Assembly (NCBI GenBank): GCA_048013815.1
Contig: CM106585.1
Coordinates: 2,294,001-2,358,000, forward strand
DNA: 64,000 nucleotides
DNA from: Setoptus koraiensis
Lineage: Eukaryota > Animalia > Arthropoda
Direction: 5' to 3'
The notes under the pieces are model-generated. The model saw only the letters and a list, made by a program, of their open reading frames with translations, was not told the DNA's origin and made no database searches. Positions 18,465-46,391 of the stretch are shown here, piece after piece. Numbering within the stretch: the stretch's first letter is position 1; every line of letters begins with the position of its first letter. Both the position numbers and the translations under genes were made by a program.

Positions 18465-19963
<1,499 letters not shown>

Positions 19964-21549: not shown

Positions 21550-22595
21550 ATTCCAATAGACAAAACAGTTGTTTTAATAAGTTGAATATCTTAAATCCAA
21601 GGTGATGAGGTATCAGGTGTGTCTCTTTATTTCTTGACCAATATAATCTATAAACGCTAATAGAATTGTAAAACCATGGTTGTAGTGACTATGTTATTAG
21701 AATACCATTGGCTTCAATAGGGTAACAATAATAATGACGATGACGAATATGACGACAATTAGTCAATAGAAATTGATAGTATTTCGAAGGTCTATCATTA
21801 ATAATATTCAATAATTTTTTATAATGATGATAGTAGTATATTTGCAATAGAATATTAATTTATCTGACTATAAGCTTTTATTTCAGTGAATCGCGATGAT
21901 AATGAAATATAGACTTGGATCAATTATTATAATAGGCTATCTCCCACGTCGCAATATTTTTTCCTGCTTATTATTTTGTCCTGCTTATCTTTCATAAGCA
22001 TTATCTCGCGTTGTTGTTCGTGTTGTTGTTAAATGCTAGCTGTATACATACTATGGGTACAAAGCTTTGCTGTTGTTGTTGAAAATAAAAACATACACAC
22101 ACAAAACTCTCATGAACTCAAGAATAATGCCCCGATCACTACACAACATGAACAGATATATCCTAGAATCTAGATAATGTTGAGAAGTTCCGAACGGTGT
22201 GCGGAACCATTCAATGAACCGCGTTCAGTTTCGCGCAAGTTCCGCCCTATTGTGAGTTTATACAAGCCAATCAGCCGGGTTAGAGTTTGTCGACACGCCC
22301 AGCGACTTACTAATCTTGTTGAAAGCGCGTGATTAAAACTATTCGTTTATCATTGGACATACACAAACATTTTATCAATTGCATTTAGGCGCTGGGAGAG
22401 GAAATTTTATAAAATTCGTCACAAATCATCAGTTAATCAGGAGACATGCATGTATTGTTGAGAAGGGCTAATTTTGCACCTTTACATTACACCTAGCGAA
22501 CCACAACGAATGATGGTGATTGTTTAGCTTGACTATGCTTCATCTAGGATGGCACGTATTTTGAAGTTAAGCATACAGCTCAATATCCGAAGCAA

Positions 22596-22678
22596 GTCAG
22601 GATGGCCGAGTGGTCTAAGGCGCCAGACTTAAGTTCTGGTCCTCAATGAGGGCGTGGGTTCGAACCCCACTTCTGACA
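22596..22678 (+). tRNA. tRNA-Leu, anticodon TAA, no intron
   Basis: GTCAGGA/TTCTGAC acceptor stem, A-box TGGCCGAGTGG, anticodon arm CCAGA-CTTAAGT-TCTGG, long variable arm, B-box GGTTCGAACCC. Confidence 0.95.
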
Positions 22679-22686
22679 CTCTTAAC

Positions 22687-22691
22687 TTTTT
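22687..22691 (+). terminator. Pol III terminator (T5) for the tRNA
   Basis: TTTTT begins 9 nt after the tRNA 3' end. Confidence 0.7.
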
Positions 22692-23588
22692 GCGACATTA
22701 CTTGCCACGGTACAACTCATGTTTCTTCTGATGTTTTAACACTCCACTTTCATTATCATTACTATCTTGCTCTGGTTTCTTATTAAATTCATTCGATTTG
22801 TTTGATGATGATAGTAGTTGTTGTTGCTCTCGATCTGATTCGTTAAATCAGTGTCCATAGTTTACATCTAGGGATTACATAGAAAAAATAAACAACAAAA
22901 AGTAACATAGAAAAGGATGCATTCGGTTCCGATTCCCAAAGTTCTGAGAACAAAACAAGCAAAAGGTCCTCGAGTCGCTTCTGAATAAACACCAGAGGCA
23001 TGTTTGTCTCAATGGATGGTTTTTGCAACTCTCATTGCTGCGAAGTTCTCATTGTAGTCTATTTCTTTAGTTCGATTCATTTACTCTAGAGGACGCCTGG
23101 TGCACTGGGTTGTTAGCTGCTATTTACTAGCCTTTCGAATGAAAAGCTATTCATGCGCGCAGAAACACGCTCAAAGATGAAAGTTGTTCAGTCTCATGAT
23201 CATTTATCCATCTAGAGTAAGTATCTGTGCCCCATGAAAAACAATGGCGTATTCATGCACAGTGAGCAGTAGAAATACTAATTCAAAGAATTGTGCCGCA
23301 CAATTTGGTTGTGATGGACTTGGTGAAGTAGCTTCAGTATACCATCGAAGCGGTGTTCGTAATGTTCCACATGTTACATTCGTTATTATTTAGTATGGAG
23401 AGAATTTTAACAATACATACACCTGACACGCTTAGAATGTTGGCGTTCTAGTGACAATCGAGCATTCCCTTGGATGATGATGCTATTGTCTATTGTCGAA
23501 CACAGATCAAATTGATTAATCAAGCAATGTTTGGATGATGACGCGCCACAGATGACTAAGAACGCAAAGAAAATAACACAAATTTACA

Positions 23589-25342
23589 ATGGAGTTTGCG
23601 GAATTAATTAAGATACCAAGATTGGATAATGTTATACTCCATAGGCCACTCCATTCGCCCACAGAGGTTACACTCTGCATTACCTGTCACCACCTTATAT
23701 TATCGGCACGCAATGATAAGGACGATGAGTTATGGGTAATTAATCGGCTCTTTAGTCTTCAAACTATATACACAGTAGAAACGTGGTTGTTCAAATTAAC
23801 CTTGTGTTTATTATTCTTTCAAATCCAACATTTCTCATTTAGATACTTCATGTTATGGTCGATGTTCTTGAAAAGAGAATTACCAATTCTCAAAGCTCGC
23901 TGATTTTAAAATGTAAAGATTTCAGACGGATCCAGTTAGATGTCAGAGGCCAAGAAGAGCTACGGAGCATAGCCAACTCAATTGAGTGGTTGTCTAATCA
24001 TCAAATGGATGATCCCAGATTATTGTATCCATTCTTCTTCCGTGCAATGTTTGACATAGTTGAAGACGGTTGGTACACATTCGATATACAAAGGGAATAC
24101 AGAAAACTGCTCATGCACTTGGACGATTGGCGAATTAGTAATGTCAACAAAAACTATGCTCTTTGTCCGACCTATCCCGAATCAGTAATTGTTCCTAAGT
24201 CAATCTCAGACGAAAGCTTAGCCAAGGTAGCAAATTTCAGATGTCTTGGGCGATTCCCAGTCCTCAGTTACATCCACAAAATAAATAAGGCAGTCATAGT
24301 TAGATCGGGGCAGCCTATGATAGGCCCAAATAACAAGAGATGCAAGGAGGACGAAAGACTTATGAATGCAATCATAGGAAGCAGGAGAGGCTATATTATA
24401 GAAACAAGAACTTTGAATATAGCTCAATTAGCGAAAACCAAAGGTGGCGGCCATGAACCAGAAGCACATTATCCTCTTCTCAGACGAGTCCATCGACCCA
24501 TCGACCGGCATGTAACTATCCTTGACTCGCTGCACAAATTGGTAGAAGCTTGCAATGATAAACAGTCCACAACAGATAAATGGTTGAGCCGATTAGAATC
24601 AGCCGGATGGTTAAGACATATTAAAGACGTTCTGACATGTGCATGTTTAGTTGCACAATGTATTGATCAAGAAAGCGCCTCAGTTCTAGTTCACGGCTCA
24701 GAGGGAATGGATTCCACTTTACAAGTATGTTCCCTAGCACAAATCATTCTAGATCCTGATTGCAGGACACTTCAAGGGTTCGAGGCGTTATTAGAGCGCG
24801 AATGGCTACAGGCTGGTCATCCATTTGCCACTCGATGCAAAAGCTCGGCCTACGCCTCTCCTACCTCGGAAAAAAGAGAACAAAGTCCAACATTCCTATT
24901 ATTTCTGGACTGTGTCTGGCAAATTCATTTACAATTCCCTTGTTCATTCGAATTTAATGAGGACTTCCTTCTGCTACTGTTTGAGAATGCATATGGATCT
25001 CAATTTGGCACTTTTCTCGGCAACTGTCCAAAGGAAAGAAGTGATTTTACTTTTCACACAAAAACTGTGTCGCTCTGGTCGTACGTCAATAAACCTGATA
25101 TAATGCCCAAGTTTCTGAATCCGGTATACGAACCAAACAATCAAGCAATATGGCCGTCCGTCGCCCCACAAAGCCTGGAATTGTGGGATCGGGTATTTCT
25201 ACGCTGGTCGGTAGATTTAAGTTTCGTAGAGAAGACTCAAAAGGGTTTGACTCTAATGAGGTCACAGCAAAAAGAATTGAGAAACGAGGTGGAAAGGTTG
25301 AAGAGAAGATTAATAGATTTCGCTGATTGTCAATCACCTTGA
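23589..25342 (+). CDS. MTMR9: Myotubularin-related protein 9 (catalytically inactive), 548 aa
   Basis: Exon 1 23589-23735 (MEFAELIKIPRLDNV) and exon 2 23843-25342. Pseudo-active site VHGSEGMDSTLQV lacks the catalytic Cys/Arg; also EREWLQAGHPF, QFPCSFEFNE, WPSVAPQSL and a C-terminal coiled coil. Confidence 0.95.
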
Positions 25343-26141
25343 TTACCATCGACTATTTATGATGGAGGTGGGCGCCGAAGATTGTTGATATCAGTGGTAG
25401 TCCATAATTCTAAACTAATTATATGATGTCCAGTTTTTGTATACATGGTGGCAAACTGCAATTCCGAGTTGTTGAGAAAAATTTGTTAACATATTTACTC
25501 TAAAATAATTAAAGTATTACAAATTATAGTACTTACACATTGATCATTCGTATGGCAAGCTTGATAGGTTTTACTTTCTTCTCTACTCTCACCTCTTTTA
25601 TCGTGTAATAGGTAGGTTCATCTGAAGACTTCCGCCTCGAAAAGCCGATGCTTTGAGTGCGCACTACTATCGTTGTAACTGATTTGTTTAATAGGCATTT
25701 GATAATATAGGCGTCTCATTGTGATGTTGCTGTATTTGGCGTCACTTATCGGCCTGAAATATATGATTGAGCAATTTTAACTTGTAATTAATACGCACAA
25801 TCATAAGTTTCAGGTCAACTGTGAGCCCTGAACATTTGCTGGATAAAATATCAACACTAAATCGAAGATCTTTCTTTCTTTCGCCTATATGCCTCTGTCT
25901 GTAATATATAAAGTGTATAATTTTATAAATATATATTGAATTATTTGAGCAAATGCTATTAATTTGAACAATCCAGAGACCTGAATATTGTATTGACCAG
26001 ATTGATTGGGAGGAACTGAATGGTAAAGGGATAAAATCATTTTTAAATAGATCATTGGACTTTGCTGTCGCTGTCAGTGATTTGTTCCTATATATATGGT
26101 GAACTTGTTCACAAGCGCGCAGCCTATATAGTGCGCATAAA
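25042..26141 (+). repeat. Left arm of a 1100-bp inverted repeat (MTMR9 3' CDS plus 3' flank)
   Basis: Reverse complement of 27188-28287. Compared largely line by line: no indels and about 4 substitutions seen, all near the arm ends. Confidence 0.95.
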
Positions 26142-26922
26142 GGGTGTTGGGTAAGACATGTCAATGGTATATTGTGGTGGGATGTGCCTTCTACGATGCG
26201 TTTTTCCTACCATGATGTCATGAAATAAAAGTTACAAGTGCATTTCAGAGTTGGTCCTTACGATGGCGCTTTATTGTTGGTCGAAAAGAAAGTGAGTTTG
26301 CCAGATATCTATCTTCGACGCACAAGCGCCACCTCATGTATCGAACATAACTAGTTGCAGAAACAATACTTTTTCAGTGCACACATCTCGCTCGAAAATT
26401 ACAGATTGTGCCAAGCCCCGGCTAGATAGTGCTTAGGGAACATAAATGAGCCCTCAATTCCAATGGACGTAATTTTGAGGCACAACGGACTCTCTGTGCC
26501 TTTTCTGTGCGAAATTCTCAGAGAATCATTGGCATATCTCATCGAACACCCTTTAAATCAACCTTGTCGAGTCAATAGAATTTGTTTGTGACTCAGTTGT
26601 TGTATGCATCTTTCGCCATCTCGTGAAACTTGACCAAAAGTACCACGATAATGCCTGAACCATTCTATTCACAAGATGGCGGCTGATGCACCACCACAAG
26701 ATGTATCGCCAGTATCGCCACTACCACCACTAACCACCATTTTGGACAGAAGCAGGCGCAATCTCTCGGTGTATCCCCCGAACCTTGAAGCCAGATAACC
26801 ATATAAGGTTGCCTGGTATGCCGTGCGCCATCCGCCATTTTGTGAAGAATAATGTACAAAGTTTGGCCAACGTAGGTTCACGAGATGGCGGATGACGCAC
26901 ATTACATCGGCGCAGCTAAACT

Positions 26923-27030
26923 ACAACAGCAACGACAGCAACAACAGCAACAACAGCAACGACAGCAACAACAGCAACGACAGCAACAACAGCAACGACA
27001 GCAACAACAGCAACGACAGCAACAACAACC
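26923..27030. repeat. 18-bp-period CAA/CAG/CGA tandem repeat in the inverted-repeat spacer
   Basis: About 5 copies of AACAGCAACGACAGCAAC, followed by ACT/ACA-rich low complexity to about 27150. Confidence 0.85.
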
Positions 27031-27187
27031 CCGACTGCAGTAAGAGCAAATATATCAACTACTACCACAGCTACCAGAGCGGCAACTACTACCACAGCAG
27101 CAACTACAACTACGACTACAACTACAACTACGACTGCCACTACAATTACCATTATACTAACAAACGCCATCGACTAGGCAAGGTCTA

Positions 27188-28287
27188 TTTATGCGCTTTA
27201 TATAGGCTGCGCGCTTGAGAACAAGTTCACCATATATATAGGAACAAATCACTGACAGCGACAGCAAAGTCCAATGATCTATTTAAAAATGATTTTATCC
27301 CTTTACCATTCAGTTCCTCCCAATCAATCTGGTCAATACAATATTCAGGTCTCTGGATTGTTCAAATTAATAGCATTTGCTCAAATAATTCAATATATAT
27401 TTATAAAATTATACACTTTATATATTACAGACAGAGGCATATAGGCGAAAGAAAGAAAGATCTTCGATTTAGTGTTGATATTTTATCCAGCAAATGTTCA
27501 GGGCTCACAGTTGACCTGAAACTTATGATTGTGCGTATTAATTACAAGTTAAAATTGCTCAATCATATATTTCAGGCCGATAAGTGACGCCAAATACAGC
27601 AACATCACAATGAGACGCCTATATTATCAAATGCCTATTAAACAAATCAGTTACAACGATAGTAGTGCGCACTCAAAGCATCGGCTTTTCGAGGCGGAAG
27701 TCTTCAGATGAACCTACCTATTACACGATAAAAGAGGTGAGAGTAGAGAAGAAAGTAAAACCTATCAAGCTTGCCATACGAATGATCAATGTGTAAGTAC
27801 TATAATTTGTAATACTTTAATTATTTTAGAGTAAATATGTTAACAAATTTTTCTCAACAACTCGGAATTGCAGTTTGCCACCATGTATACAAAAACTGGA
27901 CATCATATAATTAGTTTAGAATTATGGACTACCACTGATATCAACAATCTTCGGCGCCCACCTCCATCATAAATAGTCGATGGTAATCAAGGTGATTGAC
28001 AATCAGCGAAATCTATTAATCTTCTCTTCAACCTTTCCACCTCGTTTCTCAATTCTTTTTGCTGTGACCTCATTAGAGTCAAACCCTTTTGAGTCTTCTC
28101 TACGAAACTTAAATCTACCGACCAGCGTAGAAATACCCGATCCCACAATTCCAGGCTTTGTGGGGCGACGGACGGCCATATTGCTTGATTGTTTGGTTCG
28201 TATACCGGATTCAGAAACTTGGGCATTATATCAGGTTTATTGACGTACGACCAGAGTGACACAGTTTTTGTGTGAAAAGTAAAATCA
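27188..28287 (-). repeat. Right arm of the 1100-bp inverted repeat
   Basis: Colinear reverse complement of 25042-26141 (end-coordinate sums are both 53329). Confidence 0.95.
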
Positions 28288-28611
28288 ATTCCTTAACAGC
28301 CCAGGAATAGCAGGAATGTTGGACTTTGTTCTCTTTTTTCCGAGGTAGGAGAGGCGTAGGCCGAGCTTTTGCATCGAGTGGCAAATGGATGACCAGCCTG
28401 TAGCCATACGCGCTCTATTAACGCCTCAAATCCTTGAAATGTCCTGCAATCAGAATCTAGAATGATTTGTGCTAGTGAACATATTTGTAAAGTGGAATCC
28501 ATCCCCTCTGAGCCGTGAACTAGAACCTAAGGCGCTTTCTTGATCGATACATTGTGCAACTAAACATGCACATGTCAGAACGTCTTCGATATGTCTTAAC
28601 CATCCGGCTGA
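27987..28611 (-). pseudogene. 5'-truncated inverted MTMR9 pseudogene fragment
   Basis: 28611-28296 matches 24599-24913 with about 17 substitutions and a 1-bp insertion. About 120 bp of the parent is then missing, and the near-identical C-terminal coding part follows to the stop at 27987. Confidence 0.9.
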
Positions 28612-31145
28612 GCCAATTGATTACCCATGGCTCATCGTCCCTATCATTACGTGCCGATAATATAAGGTGGTGCCTGGTTTCGCAGGGACCCAATAATGCT
28701 CGACATTTTCAATGAGGCATGTTCATCTGAATGTTCTAGCGATAAGGTCTCGTATTTTGATGAAGTATATGGTATTGCTATGAAGAACGAGAGAATGAGT
28801 CGAGAACTGTAGAAATTTAGTCTCTCGGATTCGCATTTAGTTGAAAATGTACAGACTGACTTGGAAGGCAACCAAACTGCATTGTGTTCTTATTAACCGA
28901 ATGTCCTAGAATATGAGAAACTAGAAAGGTTACTATATGAAGGAGCTACAACTTCTCCGAAATTCCGAGGACAGAACGGAACTATCTGGGCATAAAGAAT
29001 GAAAAATTTACCTCAGCCTAATATACAGGTGGACCCCTATTTCTTCCTGATAATTAGAGCACGCACCATATTTTCTCATTCAACCGCAATGAACCGTTTG
29101 GGTTCGACAATTTGTTGCTGGATATCCATCGTTGAGATAATACTCTGTAAGATCGTCAATGGCGAATGGTATATCATCCTGTATTGATTCGACTATTTCC
29201 TCTCAATCAAAATGATAGAGGAACAAGTTCTATGGCTCGGCGGTATGGTTCGAACAGGCTAAATGGAGATCCATGGCCAGATCATTCTCTACAGTTACTA
29301 TTATGTACATATAGATAAATCGTAACATCATTTCCACATAGCAATGCTTAGTATTCAAATGAACAATAGAACTCATCGATGGACAATTATCGTCAGCACC
29401 AATTTGTGCATGCAAGCTGTCGGAGGGTCTCCACCTCGATCTGTTTTGAATTGACTAAATCAAACTTTTGTCTTTATTTCACGACCATTGATTAGAGCTA
29501 ATCAAAACAACTCGAATCATTCTATTCTCCAGCATGTATGACGTAAGGGTTCCAGTCGGCAATCCTTTAAAGAAAACTCAAAGAAGCCACCCATGATGAG
29601 ACATTACCTGGTGAAGATTGCGTCAGACAGTATCGGAAGTGTTGTCTGACACGCGTCAATAGAAAAACAATCCAAACCAAGCTCGATGCCGTCGAGTTTT
29701 TTTTAAATGTGAGTGCGGGGGAGAGAGAGAGAGAGGGAGCGTGGGTTAGAAGAGGGTTGCAATGCTTCCGAGAAGGGAGCGAAAATTGCTTACTATGGAG
29801 ATTTTACATGCATTTTGCCATAGGGCGCAGCGCTCTTTGAGGCCAAAAAAAAAACTAGTAATATAACCCGGAAGGGGGAAAAACGGGGAAATGGTTAGCC
29901 GTTTCTGGTTCAGGGGATTGAGCTGAACACATTCTGGTACATGAGAACCAAATCTGGGTGTAACAGTGCGTGCCGTAAGCTTGTGAGTGTCGTGCCCTCA
30001 TAATGGTTGTCAGCCAATAGTTGGTCATTTTGAACCTAGAACTTGCACATTGCACTTTTGCCGATTAACTGTGGAGGCTGGTGCTCCTATGTGTGTGCTG
30101 CTGCATCCGTGATGCACAATTTCGTGGCTGCTCCCAATACCGCGGATTGAGCGCTAGATCCTCGCCGCAACCTGTCCGTTCGCTATCCTGTCTGCGCAAG
30201 CATTGTGCGAGAACCAGCACAGCTCGCCCACTGAACGCGCTTTGTCTGGGGGTGCGCACCGTGTGCGCTGTCAGATATCTAACCATTAGCTGACACCCTT
30301 TATGAAAGCTGTTCTTCAGGATTCTATTACTCAACAAATCAGCTGATCGTGTGACGCCAACGTTACCACTGATAAATATCCACATGTTCATACACGAACA
30401 TATTCACACTCATATATTCACCGACCGAATATGAATAGCATTGTCTGTATTCCGAACACCTCACTCACAATAAACACATGCAAATTCACTATTGTATCCT
30501 TCACATTGTGAAGTTCACATATTGTAGTCGGCATACACAAGTGTAGCCGACACAATCGATGCGATTTCAGCGCCATCTCGCAGACTTCTCGAACCTCGGC
30601 CGGCGCGAAATCTAATCTCTATTTTTTTTTTTTTAATTCGCTATTTCAAGTTCGTGAATGTCGTTGAAATAAGCGCTCGTTGATTCGTTCATCCTTCGTT
30701 GAATATATTCGTCGTTGAATGAAACTAACCCGAATATTGGCCATTTTTCCTTAATCTGGTCGATTATGTTTTTGCCAATGACACCATCAGGGAAGAATGA
30801 CAAATATCCACACACGGAACACCTGCACCTGTCATCCACGGGCCCCTCCTCTATTCACGTGTGAATTCGAATTTCGTTTGCATATTTGAAGTTCGCGCGA
30901 GTATAAAAACGACACAATAAGAGGAAGGTTTCTGTGTAATTTTGCAACAATTCATTTGTTTGTGTTTTGTTTATTCACTAAAATAGAATTGAAATCGATC
31001 CGTACTTAATGCGCAAATTTATTTAAATGGTCGTCATTAATCTTGATAACGATGTGGCTCCTAAAATATTGACGTCATACGATACACATCTCTACGTGAT
31101 TCCGCCCAGATACCACATAATCAACTAAACTTATTGCAATCAGAA

Positions 31146-33035
31146 ATGGACCCAATCGAGCAAGAAACTCAGGATGAGGCCGCTTCGCAACGTGAAATAT
31201 ACAAAGTTTACAAAAGAAGATGGCTAGTTCTATTCGCCATGTTCAATGTGGCACTCGTTGTTGGTCTTGTAAGTTTAAAATTCAGCTCTTAATCGATGTC
31301 AACTTAACACTTAAAATCAATCTACATTATTATCTAACAAAGATTATCCTTTTATCTACTCAACTTATCTACTAGCATCGTTCGCTCATATCAATCGTCG
31401 ACACACTCGACAAATACCTGGGCACTAATATTAGGGATTATGATATTATGACACAAGTTAGCATGTTCACCACGGTCTTCTCTGTATTGATTATGGCTAA
31501 GTGTCTAGATTATTTTGGCCTGAGACGAATGGTAGGCAATGACACATGAGAATTCTCCTCTGTCTTATTCGTATGTTGATTGAATCACTTGTTTTAACAG
31601 AACCCACTATTTCTCCTCCCTTTCAAATAGTCATATTTTGCGTGCCTCGTCATTGTAGCTGCAAATAGTCTTAAAGCTTTATGCATGTGGAATAATGCTG
31701 CTCCCTGGATTGTGCAACAACGGTACCATATATTGCTATTATCAGAGTTTTTTGTCGGGCTGGCCCAAAGTATATCATTCTGTGTACCGGCCAAAGTGGC
31801 CGGCTCTTGGTTTGCCCATTATGAAAACACCTTGGCTCTCGTTGTGGTTAATTGTGGATAGTAAGTTGCCAAAAAGCTGCTTTTGCTGTTAAATTTTTTC
31901 ACACCAACTATGATATTTATTATTAACTGGCCCTTATATTCTTTTCCTCACAACGAAATCAGCAACATCGGTGTCGGACTTAGCAATTTTCTCACCCCCA
32001 TTTTTGTTGCGGAGGTCGATGATATGTTTAAATTATCATATGTGTTCATGATTTCCGCTGTCATACTAACTATTATAGTTCTTACGTGTGTTACAAGATC
32101 TAGTCCAAAGTTGCCACCATCTTCAAATGCTATAATATCCGCAAATGCGGATGTAAGTTTGAAAAAAGGAATATTTGTCGTAAGTAATCTTTCGTATGAA
32201 AGACCAAGATGCCAGGCAAGATAACTTTCAATGTTTCCTCTCCTCTTTCATTCATTCATTCGCTAATTCACACAACTTTTTAACTATTTATAGATGATGA
32301 CTACTCCGAGCTATGTCACGCTTATAATGACCCTAGGTTTAAATACTGCAGTGCTTAGTTGCGAACAAATTCAGCTTGAGGATATTCTTAAAGCAAGAGG
32401 TTATTCGAACACCTTCTGTGGTCTACTTATTTCGCACGCTTACGTTTTTGGAACTATTTTCATGTTGATATCTGCAGCCTGGATCGATAACTCAACGAAT
32501 TACGTTAAAGTCAGTCGGATAGCTTGTGTTTTATGCATCCTCAGTTATACGACTTTTAACATAAGTATCATCATACCTAATATTAAAAACATTATTATAA
32601 TTACAAACATTATGGCATCCTTTGGAGCCTCACTAATGTACCCTGCCCTGATGCAAGTGTCCATAAGATGTGCGAGAGGTATATTACCAGAGGCAACTGT
32701 TTCTGCAATTACAGTGATAATCACACTGTTGCTAACGAGTGGATTTGTTAACCTACTTGATCCACTGAGAAATCTCATCAAAATTTACCCTGATTATGAA
32801 AGTAAGTTAATCCTCCAAACGCGGCGAAGAGATCTCTAGCGAATTGAATATCCAACTAATTTACCATTCTTTCTACTATTAAGCCCCCATGATATCCTAC
32901 CTTATTGTGATACTACTCATGAACATGGCCTATGTGGCCTTTTTCGCAGTGCCAAACACCCAAAGTTTGCAAAAGCGCCTCTACGATTCTGATGAAGACC
33001 CAATCCTTCCAGCTGATTACGATTCCATAGAATAG
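31146..33035 (+). CDS. MFS transporter, SLC49 (FLVCR/MFSD7/DIRC2) family, 461 aa
   Basis: Exons 31146-31268, 31376-31531, 31631-31860, 31963-32179, 32294-32801 and 32884-33035 join in frame. Motifs YKVYKRRW, PAKVAGSWFAHYENTLA and TRSSPKLPPS, with many hydrophobic helices. Confidence 0.85.
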
Positions 33036-33316: not shown

Positions 33317-35050
<1,734 letters not shown>

Positions 35051-37654: not shown

Positions 37655-38386
37655 TTAAGCGTCTTTGCGCTTGTTTTCTTGCAACCATAATTCTATGTCT
37701 GGATTCATCTTAAGATTGGTGCAGGAAATGTAAGGGTGAGTATAGTAGAACATATCGAGTTTTTGTAATCGATCATCTATAGCTTTCAAAGTTGGATATT
37801 TGCTTGTATCCACCTTGAATCGACGAGCATTAAACATCTGCGGAACTAGGCTAATATCGGCGATTGTTATCTCGTCACCAACACAATAAAGACCTGCAGT
37901 GGATTTAACCAAAATCTCCAGATTTTCAAACTTTCTCGCTATCCAATAAGAGGCGAACTTTTGTTTTTCTTCAAAAGACAGCTGTGGCCTCTCTAGAGGC
38001 TCATGAACTTTCAATAGAGTCTCCAGATTTTGCAACGGTTGAATGCCACCAGAAATAGTGTCTGCTATAGCTTTTGCTTTAGCTTTCAATACTGAGTCCG
38101 TTGGATAAATTGAAGGCTTCGGATATTTCTCTTGAATATAGTCTATAATAGCCAATGATTGAGTGATGCATTCCTTTTTTCCATTATTGGTGACAGTAAG
38201 AGCCGGCAATTGATGCATCGGATTAACCTCAGACAAAAATTCGCTAGTATGTTGCTGTCCTCCTAGTAGGTCGACATCATTAGTAGTATAAGTTATACCT
38301 TTCATGTATAAAGCAGCTCGTACTCTCCATGAAGCAGAGCTCAAGTAATAATTGTGTAGAATCATTTTGTCTTCGTTGAGGGCCAT
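37655..38386 (-). CDS. GSTZ1: Glutathione S-transferase zeta / maleylacetoacetate isomerase, intronless
   Basis: SSASWRVRAAL, NPMHQLPAL, TQSLAIIDY, GIQPLQNL, YCVGDEITIADISLVPQMFNARRF. Confidence 0.93.
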   Translation of the reverse strand: MALNEDKMILHNYYLSSASWRVRAALYMKGITYTTNDVDLLGGQQHTSEFLSEVNPMHQLPALTVTNNGKKECITQSLAIIDYIQEKYPKPSIYPTDSVLKAKAKAIADTISGGIQPLQNLETLLKVHEPLERPQLSFEEKQKFASYWIARKFENLEILVKSTAGLYCVGDEITIADISLVPQMFNARRFKVDTSKYPTLKAIDDRLQKLDMFYYTHPYISCTNLKMNPDIELWLQENKRKDA

Positions 38387-39547: not shown

Positions 39548-40933
39548 ATGAGTAACAATTGTGGTGTCCCATCATTGGAAGTTCCAGACCAATTGTTAGA
39601 AGTTCATATTATCGGGGTATTTAAAGTATGGCATATAATTTTTATAGTAATAGCTTTCCTAGTCACAATCGCCATTGTGTACTGTTGTTTTCACAGATGC
39701 CGTATACCTAGAACGAAGCAAGAGATTGAAGCCGATTCCATGAGAGCAAACTTGGCGAAAAAATTCCGAGAACATCTTCAAGAACTACCAGTGGAACAAA
39801 CATCATTCATGGATGTATTGAAGAAAGTTCAAGAGCTAGAGGATCTCAAAAAGGAGCATGAAAATGAAGATGGTATTGGCCCTAAGAAGCGGATGGGGTG
39901 GCTCAAAATGTTAGGAAAAGTAGAGACTATAAATAAAGAAGATGGAGATGACATGTTATTAGAAAAGAAGAGTGAAGATGTTGCAAATCCAATCTCCCCT
40001 GTAGTGAGTTTAGGAATGGATAACAATGACCAGCCACAAACAGATACAGCAGATAATATTCCCGAGCCTCAACTAGATACAACTATTGATACCAAGCCAA
40101 ATTTCATTTCGCCAGAGGAGACAGAAAGTGTGAAACAGATAAGGACGAAATTAGTTGGTGGTGAGAAGTTGAACAGAACTGAAAGAAAACGAATTAACCA
40201 AGTGGAGAAAGCATTAAAGAGGGCAAAAAAGGAAGCTGAAAAGTTGGCCAAATTAAATAATAAATTATTAATGAAGAAGGAAAAACTAGAATTGATTGAG
40301 CAAAAAAGGAAAGAGAAAGCAGCTAAATTAGAGTCAGAAAAACTTTTGAAGGAAGAAAAGAAAGCGGCAAAACTGGAGGAAGAAAAACTCTTGAAACAAG
40401 AAAAGAAAGCGACCAAAAAAGAAGAAAAGCACGTGAAAGAAGAAAAGAATGTAGATGAAGAAAAGCATGTAAAAGAAGAGAAGCATGTAAAAGAAGAGAA
40501 GCATGTAAAAGAAAAGAAGCATGTAAAAGAAGAGAAGCATGTGAAAGAAGGAAAGCATGTAAAAGAAAAAAAGAAAGACCCCAAAGATTCCGAAAAGTTA
40601 GTTAGTCGCAGCTTCGCCAAACCAGAAGTAGCAGAAAAGATCACCCCTCCTAGAGTCACTCAAACTAAATCCAAACGACAAACGTCACCCACTACCGAAG
40701 TGTCGAATGGTAAAGGTCTGAAGGATATTCCATCGAGGCACACTCATCATCATAGTGAAAATAGGGGGCGATCCAAATCCAGACGGCATCATTCAACATT
40801 AAAGAAAGAGGATCGCTCCAAGCTCAAGAAGAGTGTGCCTTCAAATCAAGACGATGCCACGATAAAGATCAGAAATCCTGAGATGAGAGAGATATATCAA
40901 ACTATAATCGATATTGACAAGTTGAGGCAATGA
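39548..40933 (+). CDS. TMIE: TMIE (transmembrane inner ear) homolog with a long Lys/Glu-rich C-terminal extension, intronless, 461 aa
   Basis: Hydrophobic helix VWHIIFIVIAFLVTIAIVY followed by CCFHRCRIPRTKQEIEAD, matching the TMIE signature CCxxxCRxPRTxxEIEA. Confidence 0.85.
   Translation: MSNNCGVPSLEVPDQLLEVHIIGVFKVWHIIFIVIAFLVTIAIVYCCFHRCRIPRTKQEIEADSMRANLAKKFREHLQELPVEQTSFMDVLKKVQELEDLKKEHENEDGIGPKKRMGWLKMLGKVETINKEDGDDMLLEKKSEDVANPISPVVSLGMDNNDQPQTDTADNIPEPQLDTTIDTKPNFISPEETESVKQIRTKLVGGEKLNRTERKRINQVEKALKRAKKEAEKLAKLNNKLLMKKEKLELIEQKRKEKAAKLESEKLLKEEKKAAKLEEEKLLKQEKKATKKEEKHVKEEKNVDEEKHVKEEKHVKEEKHVKEKKHVKEEKHVKEGKHVKEKKKDPKDSEKLVSRSFAKPEVAEKITPPRVTQTKSKRQTSPTTEVSNGKGLKDIPSRHTHHHSENRGRSKSRRHHSTLKKEDRSKLKKSVPSNQDDATIKIRNPEMREIYQTIIDIDKLRQ
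40418..40570 (+). repeat. Coding 18-bp tandem repeat, (KEEKHV)x~8
   Basis: AAAGAAGAGAAGCATGTA-like units read directly inside the TMIE ORF. Confidence 0.9.

Positions 40934-43116: not shown

Positions 43117-46391
<3,275 letters not shown>

Follow-up and report, generated by a model that had tools for sequence, protein, structure and literature searches.

A stretch of about 1.1 kb at the 3′ end of an MTMR9-like gene of the small plant mite Setoptus koraiensis is repeated downstream in inverted orientation, almost without mismatches, and the question that this raises is whether the two arms are kept alike by selection for RNA pairing or have become alike in some other way. The first-pass annotation of the window (the whole 64,000-nt stretch of DNA that was analysed) had read the repeat as a candidate hairpin-RNA or antisense regulator. 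We propose instead that the locus probably arose through a lineage-specific, tail-to-tail inverted duplication, pseudogene decay of one copy and then arm-to-arm gene conversion of the core; about 1 kb of both copies would most likely have been kept identical by copying between them. The sequence pattern, a flawless core between diverged margins, is of the kind that gene conversion in an old gene/pseudogene pair leaves behind; it does not mark selection for pairing, and a regulatory role does not appear to be the most economical reading. The features of the locus are collected in Table 1.

Table 1. Features of the MTMR9-like gene and its inverted copy, in window positions.
Feature	Position	Strand	Remarks
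MTMR9-like exon 1	23589..23735	+	49 codons, phase 0; ORF and GT donor read from sequence
MTMR9-like intron, 107 nt	23736..23842	+	GTAAT donor and TTTAG acceptor read from sequence
MTMR9-like exon 2 to stop codon, intact	23843..25342	+	ORF and Pfam PF06602
Left arm of near-perfect inverted repeat	25035..26141	+	Last 308 nt of CDS and 799 nt of 3′ flank
Perfect core, left copy (putative gene-conversion tract), 1038 nt	25073..26110	+	Zero mismatches
ATTAAA poly(A)-signal variant in left arm	25508..25513	+	166 nt after stop codon
Spacer	26142..27187	.	Unique in genome; no Pfam or Rfam match
AATAAA poly(A) signal	26224..26229	+	83 nt past left arm
Spacer small hairpins	26605-26690 and 26823-26900
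Spacer microsatellite, 9-nt period	26923-27027
Right arm, 3′ part of inverted pseudogene copy	27188..28294	-	Repeat search
Perfect core, right copy	27219-28256	-	Zero mismatches
ATTAAA in right arm	27637..27642	+	Further possible stop for read-through
TAA stop codon at junction of 120-nt deletion	28293..28295	-	Parent 24914-25033 missing; alignment
Decayed pseudogene block	28296..28611	-	Corresponds to parent 24599-24913; 94-95% identity, 17 mismatches
Outermost pseudogene block	28612..28685	-	Corresponds to parent ~23675-23750; 86-88% identity

The parent gene occupies 23589-25342 on the + strand, with an intact ORF that ends in a stop codon at 25340-25342; its exon 1 and exon-2 ORF were queried separately. 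The protein matched PF06602 over profile positions 1-351 of 352 (E = 5.6e-132; Pfam). Its best named homologues are the MTMR9 proteins of acariform mites, and MTMR9 of mites, spiders and vertebrates are 56-66% identical to it. Active myotubularins carry C-S-D-G-W-D-R-T at the active-site loop (C-x5-R); the translation has HGSEGMDST at this position. On both counts the gene fits MTMR9, a catalytically inactive myotubularin, having a full-length phosphatase-like domain in which non-catalytic residues replace C-x5-R. At the intron, one relative (L025) has a single uninterrupted ORF that aligns to 23586-23750, and the outgroup P0001, whose protein is 96% identical to the parent, reads through a different intron sequence.

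The structure of the inverted copy, its decay and its mosaic identity to the gene can be read directly from the alignments. The arms are 1107 nt each, 99% complementary and spaced 1046 nt apart (repeat search), with six mismatches over the full 1107 nt, or seven counting position 25034. The feature annotated earlier at 25042-28287 is this same repeat, trimmed by 7 nt on each side, and it is real: its make-up from the end of the MTMR9 CDS (308 nt) and flank (799 nt) is as had been described, and the estimate of about four mismatches holds, exactly four falling inside those limits (25072, 26111, 26131 and 26132). A search of the 48.8-Mb genome against itself found the repeat in exactly two copies, inverted on the same chromosome around a unique spacer, which excludes a chance origin. 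A transposon or MITE origin of the arms was ruled out, there being only two copies in the genome. Only the core of the mirror had been recognized; homology extending outwards beyond the arm had been missed, as the right copy runs to 28685.

What lies beyond the arm is a damaged continuation of the gene. The block at 28296..28611 carries a 1-nt insertion at 28527 and still contains a recognizable PF06602 fragment (E = 1.3e-24; Pfam). The outermost block represents the end of exon 1 with some 15 nt from the start of the intron. It abuts the sequence that matches parent position 24599, so that 850 nt of the parent are deleted between them, and past 28685 the DNA is unrelated and unique. The copy therefore combines the 850-nt and 120-nt deletions, the insertion and the junction stop codon with amino-acid changes found in the copy only, and it has neither a start codon nor a promoter region. 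Parent and copy differ at nine synonymous and eight non-synonymous codons in the diverged coding blocks. The parent residue is that of outgroup P0001 at seven of the eight non-synonymous sites, which identifies the right copy as the decaying one; at the eighth (24680) all three differ. States common to parent and pseudogene appear ancestral with respect to P0001 and carry no information on the age of the duplication. A processed pseudogene was also considered and ruled out, because the first ~15 nt of the intron are kept, 799 nt of flank extend past the ATTAAA at 25508 and there is no poly(A) tract; retention of the intron start and of this flank marks the copy as a DNA-level duplicate, not a retrocopy. 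The right copy is a decayed, non-processed pseudogene of the intact MTMR9-like gene.

This architecture bears on the possibility, raised in the first-pass annotation, that the whole repeat is a fold-back chimera, produced by whole-genome amplification or from a PacBio missed-adapter read, and absent from the mite. Fold-back chimeras are common in the amplified DNA of tiny animals, but a perfect mirror is not what is seen here: the right arm continues into a copy that is 5-12% diverged and internally deleted, then into unrelated DNA, and the arms are separated by 1046 nt of unique sequence. The source assembly was made with Flye and NextPolish from unamplified DNA of >100,000 pooled mites, sequenced from 30-kb PacBio CLR libraries (PMC11920263); a fold-back from whole-genome amplification is unlikely because no amplification took place. 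We consider a chimera of either kind extremely improbable.

The distribution of mismatches is more informative than their number. All of those in the arms lie at 25034-25072 and 26111-26132, within 39 nt of the arm ends. Between these clusters the core has 0 mismatches in 1038 nt, an identity known from one consensus assembly, compared with 32 in 452 nt (7%) elsewhere (Fisher p = 1.2e-17); if the core diverged at the 5.4% seen in the block next to it, the probability of 0 in 1038 would be ~1e-25. Divergence outside the core is 5-12%. The uninterrupted homology block measures 1108 nt, and the core stops 39 nt short of the 120-nt deletion on one side and 31 nt short of the spacer on the other. 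The locus has the features of a gene-conversion palindrome, namely two inverted copies, mosaic identity and a tract lying within unbroken homology near heterologies. The clustering at the arm ends and the ATTAAA at 25508 were further points overlooked in the first-pass annotation.

We propose that most of the MTMR9-like gene plus its 3′ flank was duplicated as DNA, inverted and tail-to-tail, and that the distal copy, with no start codon or promoter region, then decayed into a pseudogene. Intrachromosomal arm-to-arm gene conversion would have homogenized the sole long unbroken block of homology (1108 nt), with the heterologies at its two ends (the 120-nt deletion on one side and, on the other, the spacer, where homology ceases) stopping heteroduplex extension, so that the core would end 31-39 nt inside the edges. 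It is established that arm-to-arm conversion can hold palindrome arms >99.9% identical (PMC3723533, PMC8600007). We infer conversion as the cause here, with the parent gene as the probable donor. Where the tract is coding, 5/90 parent residues are unlike those of P0001, compared with ~15/405 elsewhere, a difference that is not significant, and comparison with the outgroup proteins gave no significant signal for the direction of conversion.

Another explanation for the perfect core is that the repeat is real but that assembly or polishing created its identity, by writing a collapsed consensus into both arms of a repeat whose true arms are as diverged as the outer blocks. A collapsed consensus would likewise leave a perfect core with diverged edges, and the CLR reads behind the assembly were noisy and came from wild mites that had been pooled (PMC11920263). 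The locus lies in a short contig of 24.3 kb, bounded on each side by a 500-N gap that adjoins homopolymer runs of ~900 nt of A or C, and short reads would multi-map in identical copies and so be unable to restore differences between them. However, reads from the 30-kb libraries are long enough to cross all 5 kb of the structure into unique sequence on either side, and with such reads Flye's long-read polishing should, from the behaviour of the tool, restore copy-specific bases. Flye's usual minimum overlap exceeds 1.1 kb, so a repeat of this length would not be handled as a collapsed repeat edge. The tract ends also coincide with biological heterologies, and we regard a polishing artefact as quite unlikely. 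Highly unlikely, in our view, is an origin in two layers, in which, without classical conversion, an old inverted pseudogene was partly overwritten when a very recent template switch or break-induced replication re-copied 25035-26141 onto the distal copy. Such a history accounts for the same step in identity, but it requires the second event to have landed exactly in register with the old copy, no new junction sequence was seen at either tract end in the alignments, and the outcome would be indistinguishable from that of a long conversion tract.

The reading that prompted the question, a functional cis-linked hairpin RNA (hpRNA) or antisense regulator whose perfect core is kept by selection for pairing, has to be weighed against the same pattern. 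MTMR9 transcripts would have to skip the poly(A) signals, continue across the spacer into the right arm and form ~1.1 kb of dsRNA, from which Dicer would generate siRNAs against the final 308 nt of the coding sequence together with the 3′ UTR. In another version, an antisense RNA would start from a promoter within the spacer. The orientation of the arms suits read-through, and in the predicted fold of 24599-28611 (MFE -2882 kcal/mol) 1095/1107 arm positions pair in register, so that the structural part of the earlier proposal, a read-through hairpin, is borne out by modelling. The antisense relation to MTMR9 mRNA that had been described for a + strand transcript starting in the spacer is also correct, the + strand of the right arm being 100% antisense to MTMR9 25073-26110. 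Three poly(A)-signal matches lie along the read-through path, though: the ATTAAA at 25508 and the AATAAA at 26224, the latter present past the left arm as had been noted, both precede the right arm, and the ATTAAA at 27637 lies within it. Clustering of mismatches at the arm ends is the expectation for heterology-limited conversion, and the 315-nt block farther out has been free to diverge.

The genome has candidate genes for the protein machinery of such a pathway, with at least 10 Piwi-domain loci and five loci with paired RNase III domains (Argonaute- and Dicer-like genes of any subfamily). An RdRP (PF05183) gave no match in a profile search in which the control profile was equally silent; taken at face value, this would leave hairpins or convergent transcripts as the only sources of dsRNA. 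It is established that hpRNAs derive from, and are sometimes adjacent to, their targets (PMC10317233), and a young hpRNA locus would also look like a perfect 1-kb hairpin-forming unit on the gene's own 3′ end. Nevertheless, no clear AGO2 or R2D2 was found in the eriophyoid Aculops lycopersici, which was concluded to have either a non-canonical siRNA pathway or none (PMC7738191). MTMR9 is moreover a conserved housekeeping-type gene, whereas the known hpRNA targets are young testis or selfish genes. The repeat is also absent from a JGI metagenome relative with 71% protein identity: no inverted repeat or second MTMR9 copy was found in the 8 kb of downstream sequence covered in that one relative, with which downstream synteny is not conserved. 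On balance a functional regulator seems unlikely, and we infer that the repeat has no regulatory role; should transcription run beyond the signals at 25508 and 26224, a long hairpin RNA would form, as a side effect of the architecture. It is improbable, too, that this is a nascent self-linked hpRNA locus, in which the working MTMR9's own 3′ end would be one arm and the choice of poly(A) site would decide between mRNA and a ~1-kb dsRNA that silences MTMR9. If true, it would place such a locus in a lineage thought to be without the canonical AGO2/R2D2 siRNA pathway. The one use of wider interest would be as a natural dsRNA source for probing the endogenous siRNA pathway in eriophyoid mites.

Gene conversion as the preferred explanation places the locus beside several known systems. 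Like the human Y and X palindromes (PMC3723533, PMC8600007), it has inverted arms around a unique spacer, and an arm identity far above the age of the duplication that is explained by intrachromosomal conversion. Those palindromes extend over tens of kb to Mb, whereas the mite repeat is ~1 kb and apparently autosomal, in a mite with two chromosomes; only part of the mite duplicate has been homogenized, and one arm is a dead gene fragment. Nothing therefore suggests that the mite palindrome protects gene function. In the CYP21A2/CYP21A1P pair a working gene and the decayed duplicate next to it trade sequence, so that identical segments alternate with diverged ones. The mite pair shares with pairs of this type a functional gene, a neighbouring decayed duplicate and mosaic identity, but it is inverted, tail-to-tail, and the working gene shows no trace of defects taken over from the pseudogene.

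Among the RNA-based systems, the pseudogene-derived endo-siRNAs of mouse oocytes reported by Tam et al. 2008 and Watanabe et al. 2008 were reportedly backed by small-RNA sequencing and Dicer knock-outs. Inverted-repeat or antisense pseudogene RNAs that pair with, or mimic, the parent mRNA are the shared trait; the mite case, by contrast, is a prediction from sequence. The hpRNA loci of Drosophila (PMC10317233) likewise are inverted duplicates of a coding-gene fragment near the gene, able to form long dsRNA perfectly complementary to the parent. They are defined by Dicer-dependent 21-22-nt siRNAs, a pri-hpRNA transcript and target de-repression, evidence of another kind from that at the mite locus, and each is a separate locus, whereas here the parent gene's own 3′ end is one arm. 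The mite furthermore belongs to the eriophyoids, for which no canonical AGO2/R2D2 siRNA pathway was found (PMC7738191). Nor would the repeat, as the cis-linked version of such loci that had been suggested, be new in kind, as the D. simulans hp58 and ballchen hpRNAs were born next to their targets (PMC10317233).

On this reading the locus is a clear case, on a small scale, of two commonplace processes acting on a working gene and a neighbouring pseudogene: inverted segmental duplication with decay, and heterology-limited gene conversion. The genome in which they act is among the smallest known in arthropods. The locus is also a caution that a long inverted repeat may have perfectly identical arms without this being evidence of selection for RNA pairing, and a test case for whether the perfect-core duplicates of this assembly are biological.

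The spacer itself is unique in the genome over its 1046 nt apart from a CAGCAA-type microsatellite, and its two longest ORFs have no Pfam match. Its small hairpins were considered as a repeat family, a promoter motif or a miRNA and rejected: their strict 15-nt arm motif was found at only one other locus, the motif with two mismatches was only ~2.6-fold enriched over control with many matches resembling start-codon contexts, and there was no Rfam match. The only dispersed repeat nearby, at ~29770-29990, lies outside the inverted-repeat feature. The Rfam scan of 22000-31000 found no other known RNA families besides a tRNA at 22596-22678 and a sub-threshold match to SCARNA7 at 30349-30505.

A repeat search over 23000-30500 recovered two inverted arms of 1107 nt, 99% complementary and 1046 nt apart, confirming the near-perfect inverted repeat reported in the first-pass annotation, which is real and far beyond chance. 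Local alignment placed arm mismatches at the outer end (25034, 25037, 25041 and 25072) and at the inner end (26111, 26131 and 26132), so that the 'about 4' counted earlier for 25042-28287 are exactly four. A search of the mite's own genome (48.8 Mb, two scaffolds) with 23589-26141 returned only the parent gene and its mirrored pieces, and the spacer is unique there except for a CAGCAA-type microsatellite that is common genome-wide. The first spacer bases adjoining the left arm end (26138-26166) have a 29-nt inverted match 360 nt further in, at 26527-26555 (83% identity, 11-nt perfect core), which may be coincidental or a trace left by the template switch behind the duplication.

The parent is an intact MTMR9-like gene, the exon-2 ORF of which covers the whole Pfam profile of the myotubularin phosphatase-like domain (E = 5.6e-132). 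With exon 1 and the exon-2 ORF used as separate queries, the closest named homologues were MTMR9 of acariform mites (60-66% identity); unnamed assembly-derived homologues reached 71-73%, and one (P0001) 96%. The active-site loop reads HGSEGMDST, which fits the catalytically dead MTMR9 type. In a related mite from a JGI metagenome, a single ORF at 66% identity spans both exons (L025:7770-9497, Ga0058701_10003274), and this MTMR9 therefore lacks the 107-nt intron.

Features of the MTMR9-like locus and its surroundings, with the comparison of parent and right copy
Feature	Position	Strand	Mismatches	Divergence	Remarks
500-N gap	19371-19870				adjoins 18465-19370, ~900-nt impure A homopolymer (91% matches)
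tRNA-Leu (anticodon TAA)	22596-22679	+			58.6 bits in Rfam; ~900 nt upstream of MTMR9 start
MTMR9-like exon 1	23589-23735	+			
MTMR9-like intron	between exons	+			107 nt
MTMR9-like exon 2	23843-25342	+			
Parent segment	23682-23748		8/67	11.9%	
Parent segment	24599-24913		17/315	5.4%	
Parent segment	25034-25072		4/39	10%	
Parent segment (core)	25073-26110		0/1038	0%	
Parent segment	26111-26141		3/31	10%	
Inverted arms	25035-26141, 27188-28294				
Pseudogene block	28296-28611		17		matches parent 24599-24913; 94-95% identity; 1-nt insertion at 28527
Pseudogene block	28612-28685				matches exon 1 end and ~first 15 nt of intron; 86-88% identity
ORF right of repeat	31883-32839	+			no Pfam hit
Long ORF	33764-35050	-			C-terminal zinc-finger-like end; ~70-residue poly-Q run; repeat at 34487-34691
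Glutathione S-transferase gene	37655-38386	-			GST_N/GST_C
TMIE-domain protein	39548-40933	+			long lysine/glutamate-rich repeat tail; 18-nt period at 40417-40573
500-N gap	44180-44679				adjoins 44698-45631, ~900-nt impure C homopolymer (86% matches)

The repeat had been described as built from the MTMR9 3' end, and this part of the description holds; its extent does not, as mirror homology continues past 28294 into two further blocks. The right copy is missing a stretch of 850 nt that comprises 756 nt of exon 2 and the greater part of the intron, as well as 120 nt corresponding to parent 24914-25033, with a TAA at that junction; also missing are the first ~90 nt of exon 1 and anything upstream. 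The copy retains part of the intron as well as 799 nt of flanking sequence past the stop codon, which marks it as a DNA-level duplicate and rules out a retrocopy origin. In the diverged coding blocks the two copies differ at 9 synonymous and 8 non-synonymous codons; the parent residue equals that of P0001, serving as outgroup, at seven of the latter, with a three-way difference at the eighth (24680), and the right copy is thus the decaying one. Judged from its sequence, the feature is a partial pseudogene lying tail to tail behind the intact gene of which it is a copy.

Identity between the copies is a mosaic. At the neighbouring block's rate of 5.4%, 1038 clean positions would arise with a probability of ~1e-25, and the core differs from the remaining blocks (0/1038 against 32/452; Fisher's test, p = 1.2e-17). 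The perfect tract fills the sole long uninterrupted homology block except for its margins, 39 nt on the side of the 120-nt deletion and 31 nt on the spacer side. An explanation for this is that an old duplicate pair underwent recent gene conversion, which would need homology on both sides and be unable to cross heterologies; the pattern is as expected from such a process. For palindromes there is good documentation of arm-to-arm conversion that holds the arms >99.9% identical (PMC3723533, PMC8600007). As the parent ORF is intact, either the gene would be the donor or bad conversions were removed, and the outgroup comparison does not decide between these. We favour, with some reserve, a partial pseudogene that truly exists in inverted orientation, owes its core to gene conversion and has no demonstrated function. 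That the core was re-copied in a second event, instead of by classical conversion, we regard as very unlikely.

Assembly artefacts would offer other explanations. The amplification fold-back raised earlier would mirror perfectly outward, whereas here the mirror deteriorates, first showing deletions and a divergence of 5-12% and then giving way to unrelated DNA that includes a dispersed repeat. The assembly was made from unamplified DNA of >100,000 pooled mites with 30-kb CLR libraries (PMC11920263), so amplification chimeras are unlikely, and the 5-kb structure in its entirety should be covered by single reads; a wholly chimeric repeat is scarcely credible. A collapsed consensus, limited to the core, could also produce the identity and gains something from the contig holding the repeat being just 24.3 kb, between two gaps abutting ~900-nt A and C runs, but we consider it improbable. 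These homopolymers look like contig-end junk rather than biology, and the 500-N gaps fit the 3D-DNA scaffolding of the two-chromosome assembly of the eriophyoid mite Setoptus koraiensis (PMC11920263).

The first-pass annotation proposed a hairpin-RNA or antisense regulator. A read-through transcript is indeed predicted to fold as suggested, and a long hairpin is physically possible: when the + strand of 24599-28611 is folded with ViennaRNA (MFE -2882 kcal/mol), in-register pairing takes in 1095 of the 1107 positions of the arms, and the outer block pairs at 303 of 315. The genome holds at least 10 Piwi-domain loci and five paired-RNase III-domain loci, three in open frames of 1740-2141 aa; a search run without a positive control found no eukaryotic RdRP. 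Hairpin RNAs derive from their own targets, and several, hp58 and the ballchen hpRNA of D. simulans among them, were born adjacent to these (PMC10317233), so the cis-linked idea is not new in kind. Against a functional regulator, the read-through path crosses ATTAAA at 25508, AATAAA at 26224 (present as had been noted) and ATTAAA at 27637, the right copy inherited no promoter, and no identifiable gene reads into it from the right, where ~3 kb lack a recognisable gene. A relative at 71% protein identity has one MTMR9 and no inverted repeat of at least 40 nt in 8 kb downstream. A study of the eriophyoid Aculops lycopersici detected no clear AGO2 or R2D2 and regarded the siRNA pathway there as absent or non-canonical (PMC7738191). 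Such a regulator is, on balance, unlikely.

The spacer holds two small hairpins, 26605-26690 and 26823-26900, with z between -4.3 and -5.7 for either strand and no match in Rfam; their arms measure 23-24 nt and their loops 40 and 30 nt, respectively. The arms have in common a 15-nt core, TTCACRARATGGCGG. Elsewhere in the 48.8 Mb, exact copies of this core occur at one place only, as a third inverted pair (L022:1752-1846, G000:C1:12734751-12734845; 52-nt loop) ~900 nt from an i-type-lysozyme-like ORF. Arms are conserved and loops unrelated; these may be a binding-site pair, a tiny fold-back element or a small RNA. The CAG/CAA repeats of the 33764-35050 ORF cross-match the spacer microsatellite; its zinc-finger-like fragment had no Pfam hit and presumably resembles the Sp/buttonhead type. 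The ~200-nt dispersed repeat at ~29770-29990 occurs on both scaffolds, in at least 12 copies altogether (72-77% identity). Copies are often paired in inverted orientation at a distance of 200-400 nt, e.g. C1:3722879-3723043 (-) with 3723252-3723452 (+), and a DNA transposon or MITE probably has this sequence as its terminal repeat.
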